From contig NC_000964.3 of the NCBI RefSeq assembly GCF_000009045.1, positions 3,162,001 to 3,226,000 on the forward strand: DNA of 64,000 bases, given 5' to 3'. Source of the stretch: Bacillus subtilis subsp. subtilis str. 168. Its GTDB lineage: Bacteria; Bacillota; Bacilli; Bacillales; Bacillaceae. The translations under genes were made by a program, and so were the position numbers. Below the pieces are notes generated by a model. It was given only the letters and a program-made list of their open reading frames with translations. It was not told the DNA's origin and did no database searches. Positions 54,163-56,487 of this stretch are shown here, one piece after another; the first letter of the stretch is position 1; the number at the start of each line of letters is the position of its first letter.

Positions 54163-55452
54163 TCAAAAATCAGTTTTTTTTATTTCTACAAAACGGATGT
54201 GGTGATCTTCGGCGTCGAGGATTTTAAATTCACAGCCCTCCGCGTGTATCACATCCCCTGCTTTCAGCTCCATTTTTTGCGTTAGAAGCCAGCCTGCAAT
54301 CGTATCAATTTCTTCATTTTCAATCGCAATGTCGAGAAGGTCATTCACTTCGTCTATTAGCGCTTTTCCATCCATCACATAATGGTGCTCGCCCTTTTTC
54401 AGGATGTGCGGTGTTTCATCCTGATCATACTCATCGCGGATTTCCCCGACGATTTCCTCGATAATATCCTCTACAGTGACAAGCCCCGCCGTTCCCCCGT
54501 ATTCATCGACAAGAATCGCCATGTGAATCCGCTCCTTCTGCATGCGGATTAAAAGCTGCTGAACAGGAATGCTTTCAATGACTCTGATAACGGGCCTCAT
54601 GATTTGATTCAGCTTTATCGGCTGGCCGAGAAAATAAGCTTTAAACATATCTTTGCTGTTGATGATCCCTAAAATATGATCCTTGTCATCTTTGATGACA
54701 GGGTAGCGTGTATACCGTTCATTAATGATGTGATGAATTGCCTCTTCAAGCGACTGCTCCAGAGAGATAACCGCAATTTCTGTCCGCGGAATCATAATCT
54801 CTCTCGCTACCCGGTTGTCAAATTCAAAAATCTTATTTACATAGCGGAATTCAGACTGATTGATTTCTCCCTTTTCATAGCTTTCAGAAAGGATCAGCCT
54901 TAGTTCCTCTTCGCTGATGACAACCTGATGCTCCTTTACCGAATGAAAGCCAAACAATTTCACAAGAAAACTTGCAGAGCCGTTTAATGCTTTAATAAAC
55001 GGGTACGTGATTTTATAAAACCAGATCAGCGGCTTTGCAATCCATAAGCTTACAGCTTCAGCTTTTTGAATAGAAACCGTTTTCGGGGCAAGCTCCCCCA
55101 TCACCACATGCAAAAAAGTGACGATGATAAATGCAACTACAAATGTGACAATGTGGTTAAACGGTTCCGGTATGCCTGTCATTGTAAATAAGGGATGAAG
55201 AAAACGTTCAAATGTAGGTTCACCAAGCCACCCAAGGCCGAGGGCTGTAATCGTAATCCCGAGCTGGCAGGCTGATAAATACTCGTCAAGATTGGAGATG
55301 ATTTTATGTGCGGCTAGTGCTCGGCTGTCACCGCTTTCGATGAGCTGATTGATTTTTGAACCTCTGATTTTGACGATCGCAAATTCCGCTGCAACGAAAA
55401 CAGCCGTAATGCCAATCAAAACAAAAATGGCGATCAATTGTAAAATAAGCAA
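54163..55452 (-). CDS. yugS: CNNM/DUF21-CBS-CorC membrane protein (hemolysin-like family, putative Mg2+/cation exporter)
   Basis: FVAAEFA, QLGIT, GELAPK, two CBS domains, VDEYGGTAG.VT.ED; TTG start. Confidence 0.88.
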   Translation of the reverse strand: MLILQLIAIFVLIGITAVFVAAEFAIVKIRGSKINQLIESGDSRALAAHKIISNLDEYLSACQLGITITALGLGWLGEPTFERFLHPLFTMTGIPEPFNHIVTFVVAFIIVTFLHVVMGELAPKTVSIQKAEAVSLWIAKPLIWFYKITYPFIKALNGSASFLVKLFGFHSVKEHQVVISEEELRLILSESYEKGEINQSEFRYVNKIFEFDNRVAREIMIPRTEIAVISLEQSLEEAIHHIINERYTRYPVIKDDKDHILGIINSKDMFKAYFLGQPIKLNQIMRPVIRVIESIPVQQLLIRMQKERIHMAILVDEYGGTAGLVTVEDIIEEIVGEIRDEYDQDETPHILKKGEHHYVMDGKALIDEVNDLLDIAIENEEIDTIAGWLLTQKMELKAGDVIHAEGCEFKILDAEDHHIRFVEIKKTDF

Positions 55453-55482
55453 AAAAAGCCCTTACCATAAATGGTAAGGGGC
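55451..55482 (-). terminator. Terminator-like hairpin between yugP and yugS, lying between the yugS SD and start codon
   Basis: CCCTTACCA-TTTA-TGGTAAGGG-C-T7. Confidence 0.75.
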
Positions 55483-55495
55483 CACCTCCTTAACG

Positions 55496-56173
55496 TTAAT
55501 TCTCATCACGACCGTTTAAGAAAATCATCACAAAACGAAGTAGTTCAAACAGGGAAACCAGGGCGGCGGCCACATACGTTAAGGCAGCAGCACTCAGCAC
55601 TTTATTTACCCCATTTTCTTCATTGTTTCGGATGAATCCTTCTGACACAATAATCTGCTTCGCACGTGAACTTGCATTGAATTCGACAGGCAATGTAATC
55701 AGCTGGAAAAAGACAGCCGCTGAAAACAGTATGATGCCAAGCCCGATCAAATTCAGGCTGCCGAGAAGCATGCCTCCTAAGAAAAGCAAAGGAGCTACAC
55801 CGGATGCAAAATTCACGACTGGGAAGATTTTATGTCTCAGCACAAGCGCACCATATGACTCCTGATGCTGCAAGGCATGTCCGACTTCATGGGAAGCTAC
55901 GGATATGGCGGAAATTGAGCGGCCGTAATAGACCGGCTCAGATAAACGCACCACCCGTCTTGTCGGGTCGTAATGGTCTGTTAAAGTGCCTCTTACCGGT
56001 TCGACCGGCACGTCGTAAAGACCGTTTATATCTAAAATCCGTCTTGCCGTTTCTGCCCCTGTACGTCCGCTTGAGGCTTCCACTTTTGAATATTTTTCAA
56101 AGTTGCTCTTTACTTTAAATTGTGCCCAAAACGACAATCCCAATGCGGCTATTGTTAAAAATATAAACAGCAT
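55496..56173 (-). CDS. yugP: Putative membrane zinc metallopeptidase
   Basis: HEVGH; TDHYDP; LPVEFNAS.RA; LTYVAA. Confidence 0.88.
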   Translation of the reverse strand: MLFIFLTIAALGLSFWAQFKVKSNFEKYSKVEASSGRTGAETARRILDINGLYDVPVEPVRGTLTDHYDPTRRVVRLSEPVYYGRSISAISVASHEVGHALQHQESYGALVLRHKIFPVVNFASGVAPLLFLGGMLLGSLNLIGLGIILFSAAVFFQLITLPVEFNASSRAKQIIVSEGFIRNNEENGVNKVLSAAALTYVAAALVSLFELLRFVMIFLNGRDEN

Positions 56174-56214: not shown

Positions 56215-56487
56215 TTATTTTAATGAGTTTTCTTTCTCGTGTACAGAAATGCGCTTTTTCTTCCGGCTTGGAGCACACAATCCAATCAGCAAAAAGAACA
56301 GGCCTGCTGAAAACAAATAAAAGGCGAAACTGCCGGCCAGTTCTTTCAGAAAATGAAGCCAGGAGAAGCTTCCGGAAAAGTGATTATATGAATTCAAATC
56401 GAAAATAAACAAAATCACCGCGGATGCCGCCAGCTGCGTACCGATTAAAACCACGATCGTTCTTTGAAAGATCGTCATCTTTTTCAT
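56215..56487 (-). CDS. yuzI: Small two-TM membrane protein
   Basis: 90 aa, two hydrophobic segments, basic tail. Confidence 0.65.
   Translation of the reverse strand: MKKMTIFQRTIVVLIGTQLAASAVILFIFDLNSYNHFSGSFSWLHFLKELAGSFAFYLFSAGLFFLLIGLCAPSRKKKRISVHEKENSLK

Follow-up and report, generated by a model that had tools for sequence, protein, structure and literature searches.

STAB-SD elements, described for cryIIIA, have as their hallmark a perfect Shine-Dalgarno (SD) sequence without a start codon at normal spacing. Another arrangement of distant SD and start codon is the split initiation region of bacteriophage T4 genes 38 and 25, reportedly treated in Nivinskas 1999 and in Malys and Nivinskas 2009. 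In these two genes a hairpin shortens the distance from 22 and 27 nucleotides (nt) to 5 and 11 nt, respectively, as confirmed by mutagenesis (PMC3014915). Here we describe the junction between the genes yugP and yugS of Bacillus subtilis subsp. subtilis str. 168, in which a perfect SD is separated from the yugS start codon by a hairpin followed by a run of seven U residues (U7). The junction lies on the minus strand of a 64,000-nt stretch of the chromosome (positions 3162001-3226000, hereafter the window; genome coordinate = window position + 3162000).

We propose, with a probability of roughly 0.65, that this junction forms a single RNA element, whose hairpin acts both as a transcription terminator and as the bridge of a split ribosome-binding site (RBS). 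The terminator is documented by published Term-seq data, and the bridging role is suggested by sequence comparison. The features of the junction, in window positions, are as follows.

55496..56173, minus strand: yugP coding region, 225 amino acids (aa), putative zinc metallopeptidase, with stop codon TAA at 55498-55496 (list of open reading frames, ORFs, and Pfam)
Between the yugP stop and the SD, minus strand: four nt, CGTT, preceding AAGGAGGTG (sequence)
55483..55491, minus strand: extended SD AAGGAGGTG, 32 nt from the end of GGAGG to the yugS start (sequence)
55482-55481, minus strand: GC linker between SD and stem (sequence)
55480-55472 and 55467-55459, minus strand: hairpin with stem arms CCCTTACCA and TGGTAAGGG, loop TTTA, 9 perfect pairs (sequence, fold)
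55466..55468, minus strand: ATG at the loop/stem edge, not a start codon (frame and comparison)
55462..55464, minus strand: in-frame TAA in the 3' arm of the hairpin, closing any N-terminal extension of yugS (sequence)
55458, minus strand: single C after the stem (sequence)
55451..55457, minus strand: U7 tract of the terminator, whose final two U are the first two bases of UUG (sequence)
55452, minus strand: mapped RNA 3' end (point of termination), genome 3217452 (Term-seq, PMC8060035)
55450..55452, minus strand: yugS start codon TTG (conservation and collinearity of paralogs)
54163..55452, minus strand: yugS coding region, 429 aa, candidate Mg2+ exporter of the CNNM/CorC type, MpfA paralog (ORF list and Pfam)

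The minus-strand coordinates of the SD, stem, U7, TTG and ATG had been listed in an earlier reading of the same DNA (the original prediction), and a base-by-base check of the sequence found all of them correct. The perfect 9-bp hairpin described there was also found; the gap between the yugP stop and the stem, given as 14 nt, is actually 15 nt (13 nt if an extra pair is counted), the stem being extensible to 10 pairs via G55482-C55458 with one bulged C. When the hairpin is folded, the SD and the start codon are separated by 4 + 6 unpaired nt with the 9-pair stem or by 2 + 5 with the 10-pair stem, in agreement with the 7-10 single-stranded nt foreseen after looping out of the hairpin. The 81-nt junction has a computed fold of -22.3 kcal/mol (z = -2.8 against shuffled sequences), and the hairpin segment from SD to start taken by itself reaches -14.7 kcal/mol with a z of -6.2. 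The duplex of the distal SD with the 3' tail of 16S rRNA was computed at approximately -14 kcal/mol, and no start codon located 4-13 nt past this SD opens a long frame.

A terminator at the yugS start codon

A scan of the junction for consensus terminators picks up the hairpin and its T-run as terminator-like. The stem is G+C-rich (5 of the 9 pairs are G-C; about -14 kcal/mol) and the U-tract adjoins it, with a single C followed by U7. A point of termination is recorded at this very site by the Term-seq study of Mandell et al. 2021 (PMC8060035, supplementary file 2), under the entry 'yugP+44nt' at position 3217452 of the minus strand, with the upstream sequence AAGGAGGUG, the downstream sequence UUUUUUUGC and a predicted hairpin of 25 nt with a dG of -14.3. 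This position corresponds to window position 55452, i.e. to the first U of the UUG codon, seven nt beyond the last stem pair. The termination value (%T) given for the entry is 84.85 in the wild type, 74.14 in the delta-nusG strain, 51.43 upon depletion of NusA and 28.57 when both NusA and NusG are removed (PMC8060035).

The published Term-seq data thus demonstrate that the hairpin and U7 constitute a working intrinsic terminator, ending approximately 85% of the yugP-derived transcripts at the yugS start, exactly where the original prediction had placed the end of the yugP transcript. Since the RNA 3' end falls on the first U of UUG, most yugP RNAs carry the SD and the hairpin without the yugS start codon. 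Moreover, the 44 nt separating the yugP stop from the yugS start are filled by the SD-hairpin-U7 element, leaving no room for a promoter, and the yugS mRNA must therefore come from read-through.

With the NusA/NusG-stimulated terminators of B. subtilis (PMC8060035) this element shares the hairpin, the U-tract, the mapped 3' end and the factor dependence; it is a partial terminator, passed by about 15% of transcripts. Two features set it apart from the usual B. subtilis terminators: a perfect SD of nine bases occupies the place where an A-rich stretch is usual, and the 3' end lies on the yugS start codon, which places the terminator within the RBS of this downstream gene. The supplements of the TERMITe re-analysis of Term-seq data contain no entry for yugP or yugS. 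A bidirectional terminator was considered and rejected, as no U-run follows the stem on the opposite strand. A search of the junction with Rfam 15 gave only a match to Spot 42 (55450-55523, minus strand; 20.8 bits, E 0.97, gathering threshold 80), which was taken as a chance hit to the hairpin and U-run.

Conservation of the layout in yugS orthologs and the CNNM family

The product of yugS has Pfam matches to CNNM (residues 7-201, E 4.7e-52), a CBS pair (1.5e-18) and CorC_HlyC (2.5e-18), and is 52-60% identical to four B. subtilis paralogs. The Mg2+ exporter MpfA (YhdP) has four listed paralogs, among them YugS, which has been named a candidate exporter; each of the MpfA paralogs is needed for normal osmoadaptation, and the yugS mutant shows a lag (PMC8844918). 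Its domain content likewise makes YugS a candidate Mg2+ exporter of the CNNM/CorC (MpfA) type.

A comparison of orthologous yugP-yugS junctions, which had been suggested as a check, revealed GGAGGTG, a 2-nt linker, the hairpin, a second linker and TTG in all 49 Bacillus-genus genomes, in 48 of which an uninterrupted run of 6-8 T ends in the TTG. Such conservation, which extends to the five B. subtilis paralogs (see below), goes far beyond chance. All 8 core pairs stay paired in the alignment of the genus, with two pairs changed on both sides and the remaining changes wobble-preserving. Between the yugP stop and GGAGG there are 6 to 13 nt, depending on the species of the genus, and a fixed coupling to the yugP stop codon was therefore rejected as part of the conserved design. 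The same variation, together with paralogs that keep the layout behind other genes, gives no support to the original idea that a ribosome terminating on yugP tunes yugS. Tuning by slippage on U7, raised in the same place, was not borne out either: the length of the U-run ranges from 6 to 8 among species and nothing points to slippage.

CNNM genes adjacent to yugP are also present elsewhere in the bacterial family, where three lineages retain the SD-hairpin-TTG order without a proper U-run; in one of them (L094) the stem is fully covaried. In two other genera of the same family no CNNM gene follows yugP. In a Metabacillus-like genus (L081, L082, L083 and L097; also L109) structured inserts extend the SD-UUG distance to 69-163 nt. 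These inserts reach folding energies down to -49 kcal/mol, and they sit on a conserved base stem flanked on either side by only 3-5 unpaired nt. In one species of a sister genus (L095) the hairpin of the yugP-adjacent CNNM gene is lost and initiation relies on an ordinary site (AGGAGGG, 6 nt, ATG), a natural replacement that may be useful as a control.

The layout is not confined to yugS orthologs. All five CNNM paralogs of B. subtilis are preceded by GGAGGTG, 1-5 nt, a hairpin and 4-7 nt leading to the start codon, which is TTG in yugS, yhdP, yrkA and yqhB and ATG in yhdT; the annotated starts of yhdP and yhdT agree with the layout (Lalanne 2021 supplements). The leaders of yhdP (mpfA) and yrkA resemble that of yugS in having GGAGGTG, a short linker, a CCUU-type 5' arm, an AAGG-type 3' arm and 5-6 nt before TTG. 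They differ from it in having neither a U-run after the stem nor a Term-seq terminator entry. Genome-wide pattern scans for the layout gave few matches (32 and 26), among which the CNNM genes hold the longest stems, and most matches outside this family are in-frame chance matches or genes with a normal SD of their own.

We also surveyed 80 named CNNM loci from the species collection, by automatic classification and inspection by eye; the surveyed genomes are related, and the counts that follow overstate the independence of the cases. The layout was recognised in about 41 of 51 Bacillales loci and in one Pectinatus locus, and in none of 28 CNNM loci from other phyla. Its carriers include Neobacillus, Peribacillus, Cytobacillus, B. 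mycoides, Lysinibacillus and Sporosarcina, as well as Planococcus, Staphylococcus, Sporolactobacillus and some Paenibacillus. Over 47 layout cases, the median z of the hairpin is -3.9 (below -2 in 44 cases), the median duplex of the distal SD with the 16S tail is -15 kcal/mol, and the start codon is TTG in 41. The linear distance between SD and start varies about 7-fold across the family (23-163 nt) and the unpaired flanks stay at a few nt. The stems differ in sequence across paralogs and genera, and such a diversity of sequence and length is difficult to account for if selection does not act on the fold.

A run of 6-8 U after the stem is present only in the Bacillus yugS copies, the other family members having 2-5. 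The paralog hairpins provide a natural control: in Term-seq they are not terminators, the table of Mandell 2021 having no terminator entry for them and none at the yhdP junction. The only 3' end listed near one of them has a %T of 0 and lies inside the hairpin loop of the yhdT leader (L101, genome 1035539, plus strand); it may be a processing or decay end. We found no match in Rfam to the long-insert leaders of the Metabacillus-like genus or to the four B. subtilis paralog leaders, and no description of a CNNM leader in Rfam or in the searchable literature.

Two B. subtilis genes of other families were observed with a similar arrangement. A gene for a NusG-like protein starting MEKNWYVVHTYSGYENKV (genome ~117855-117892, plus strand) is preceded by GGGAGGG, a 6-pair hairpin and 7 nt ending at ATG, and is possibly a further split RBS. 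A gene for an LrgA/CidA-like membrane protein (genome ~4109800-4109845, plus strand), with GGAGG, an 8-pair hairpin and GTG, is a candidate for the same layout.

As for the upstream neighbourhood, YugP matches Zn_peptidase_2 of Pfam (E 1.8e-88) and has been described as a candidate protease located in the inner spore membrane (PMC13393411). Just upstream of yugP there is an ORF for a hydrophobic protein of 90 aa without a Pfam match (window 56218-56487, minus strand), the 3' end of which contains a promoter-like site (56245-56217) approximately 40 nt before the yugP ATG.

Bridging hairpin, masked SD and other explanations

The bridging half of our proposal is that of a discontinuous RBS, as envisaged in the original prediction. 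It is supported by comparison: the distal SD is invariant, the hairpin is retained with compensatory changes, and the spacing in the folded state remains short at very different linear distances, across orthologs, paralogs and many genera. The 32 nt that separate the distal SD of yugS from UUG represent a non-functional linear distance.

Several observations weigh against this interpretation. Within the genus the stem is near-invariant, with thin covariation (2 of 9 pairs changed on both sides), and the strong support, provided by the paralogs and the other genera, comes from related, non-independent sequences. When 33 distinct yugS-ortholog junctions were used to build a covariance model, the model failed to retrieve the paralog leaders; in its own genome it found only yugS, followed by ordinary terminators at E > 0.3. 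The family has an architecture in common, and not an alignable sequence. Finally, the 3' arm of the yugS hairpin contains UAAGGG, six nt before UUG, which could pair with the anti-SD at -5.6 kcal/mol.

This last feature is the basis of an alternative that we consider unlikely, namely a plain terminator combined with a masked proximal SD (UAAGGG). The hairpin would then be inhibitory, yugS would be translated only when it is opened, and the distal SD would act as a standby site or have some other role, with no bridge to the start. In most family members the start is indeed preceded, at 4-8 nt, by a purine-rich 3' arm (AAGG, AGGG or GAGGG). In about half of the cases the computed pairing with the anti-SD is -6 kcal/mol or stronger, and the 5' arm is CCUU-like and in this resembles the anti-SD. 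In two Planococcus loci (L144 and L145) the distal SD is only GAGGTGA and the 3' arm offers GGAGGG at normal spacing from TTG; of the two, the masked proximal SD seems to be the stronger one there. Across the 47 cases, however, the proximal stretch is weak (median -6 kcal/mol), and it is absent (-3.5 kcal/mol or weaker) in about a dozen lineages, namely those of the Metabacillus type, Cytobacillus oceanisediminis, Sporosarcina, Pallidibacillus, Rossellomorea and Neobacillus drentensis, whereas the distal SD is found throughout, at about -15 kcal/mol. In the Metabacillus-like leaders the polarity of the arms is reversed and no proximal SD exists, yet the SD and UUG still flank the base of the stem. 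A pure standby site, moreover, needs no flanks fixed at 3-7 nt each. An RNA thermometer, or an SD-masking hairpin of that kind, would need a weak stem with mismatches, melting at physiological temperatures over the functional SD; it was also considered and rejected, as the stem is perfect (9 pairs, about -14 kcal/mol) and the strong SD lies outside it.

Even less probable, in our opinion, is a role of this start-less SD as a STAB-SD-type stabiliser, at which a bound ribosome or 30S subunit blocks 5'-to-3' decay, with no relation to yugS initiation. The SD of the junction is indeed perfect and has no start at normal spacing, and 85% of the RNAs with this SD carry no yugS start. A stabiliser, however, guards the RNA located downstream of it, of which the terminated transcripts have about 40 nt. 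Nor does a stabiliser need an SD fixed 1-5 nt from a hairpin that abuts a start codon, as is the case in dozens of genera and in five paralogs whose upstream contexts differ; what distinguishes yugS from the cryIIIA type is precisely that its SD is tied by the hairpin to a conserved start.

The remaining alternative concerns the start codon itself. There is practically no chance that the true start is the ATG at 55468, with the reference carrying one U too many or the polymerase slipping on the U-run: six U would bring this ATG into frame, but in close relatives its place is taken by AAG, ACG, GTG or GCG, the stretch between ATG and TTG has two bases fewer in one species and one inserted base in another (L002, L006), the U-run ranges from 6 to 8 among species, the stem holds a TAA in the yugS frame, and the ATG would lie inside the stem-loop with an SD spacing of 16 nt. 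An ATG start or a frameshift was thus ruled out by the ortholog comparison. With 16 nt between its position and that of the TTG, this ATG is one nt out of frame, as originally noted. The in-frame codons that precede the TTG are TGG TAA GGG CTT TTT. A mini-ORF starting from a GTG inside the SD was likewise rejected, as the spacing would be zero and the paralogs differ in the frame that this GTG has with respect to the main start.

Conservation supports UUG (55452) as the real start of yugS. In the 49 Bacillus-genus orthologs TTG is invariably kept as an in-frame start followed by an open CNNM frame, and no other in-frame start is conserved (the TTG at codon 6 is not); the second codon varies across the genus (CTT, TAT, AAT, ATC). 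All five paralogs align from residue 1, the FVAxEF motif ending at residue 24 or 25. With the TTG start it is FVAAEF in YugS, ending at residue 24 and collinear with the four paralogs, as the original prediction had indicated for this family.

Proposed mechanism and comparison with known systems

Taking terminator and bridge together, the junction could work as follows. The hairpin and U7, helped by NusA and NusG, stop about 85% of the yugP transcripts on the first U of UUG, as the Term-seq data show. In the transcripts that escape termination, roughly 15%, this hairpin would fold, looping out 22-25 nt and bringing the SD from 32 nt to approximately 7-10 unpaired nt from UUG, so that a 30S subunit docked on the SD could reach the start. 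Terminator read-through would set the level of yugS mRNA, and the split site together with the weak UUG would then set its translation.

The SD-hairpin-UUG arrangement is probably the ancestral translation start of the MpfA/CNNM genes in Bacillales. Since the U-run is present only in Bacillus yugS, an older bridging hairpin appears to have been turned into a terminator. On the simplest account, the short linker following the hairpin of the yugP-adjacent copy would have become a U-run in the ancestor of Bacillus, by which the bridging hairpin gained its additional role, and the resulting partial terminator would separate the expression of yugP from that of yugS.

A further suggestion, which we regard as doubtful, is that the SD-hairpin-UUG module lets magnesium exporters be translated in response to Mg2+. 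A rise in free Mg2+ would make the bridging fold more stable and the rejection of UUG less strict, and the synthesis of the exporter would rise with no need for a protein or riboswitch sensor. In the case of yugS, NusA/NusG-dependent read-through, which may depend on ionic conditions, would form a second gate. If true, this would explain why the layout and UUG have been kept in five paralogs and dozens of genera.

What is new at this locus is that a terminator separates an SD from its start codon, with the RNA 3' end mapped experimentally. The yugS junction indicates that a hairpin of the bridging kind can take on transcription termination as well, and a single 46-nt element would thus set both the amount of the downstream mRNA and the manner of its translation. 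For the terminator half, experimental support from genome-wide data is already available. It also follows that an intergenic terminator need not imply a separate promoter for the downstream gene, that an SD without a nearby start may not be orphaned, and that start-codon callers requiring normal SD spacing will misjudge the CNNM family. Natural variants with and without the U-run may be used to test whether docking of the ribosome on the nascent SD competes with folding of the terminator, in an organism in which transcription and translation are uncoupled.

The split RBS has been a textbook curiosity of phage T4; the layout described here is conserved in cellular MpfA/CNNM magnesium exporters across Bacillales. 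As in T4 genes 38 and 25, the SD of yugS is too far from its start (32 nt), the hairpin shortens this distance (to about 7-10 nt) and is conserved in relatives, and yugS shares with gene 25 the location at an intercistronic junction. There are also differences. The yugS layout belongs to a cellular gene family, with representatives in many genera of Bacillales and in five paralogs of one genome, and not to a phage; the start codon of the CNNM genes is almost always UUG, and their hairpin may hold inserts of up to about 160 nt. The split sites of T4 were demonstrated by mutation and that of yugS is deduced from comparison. In addition, the hairpin of yugS doubles as a working transcription terminator.

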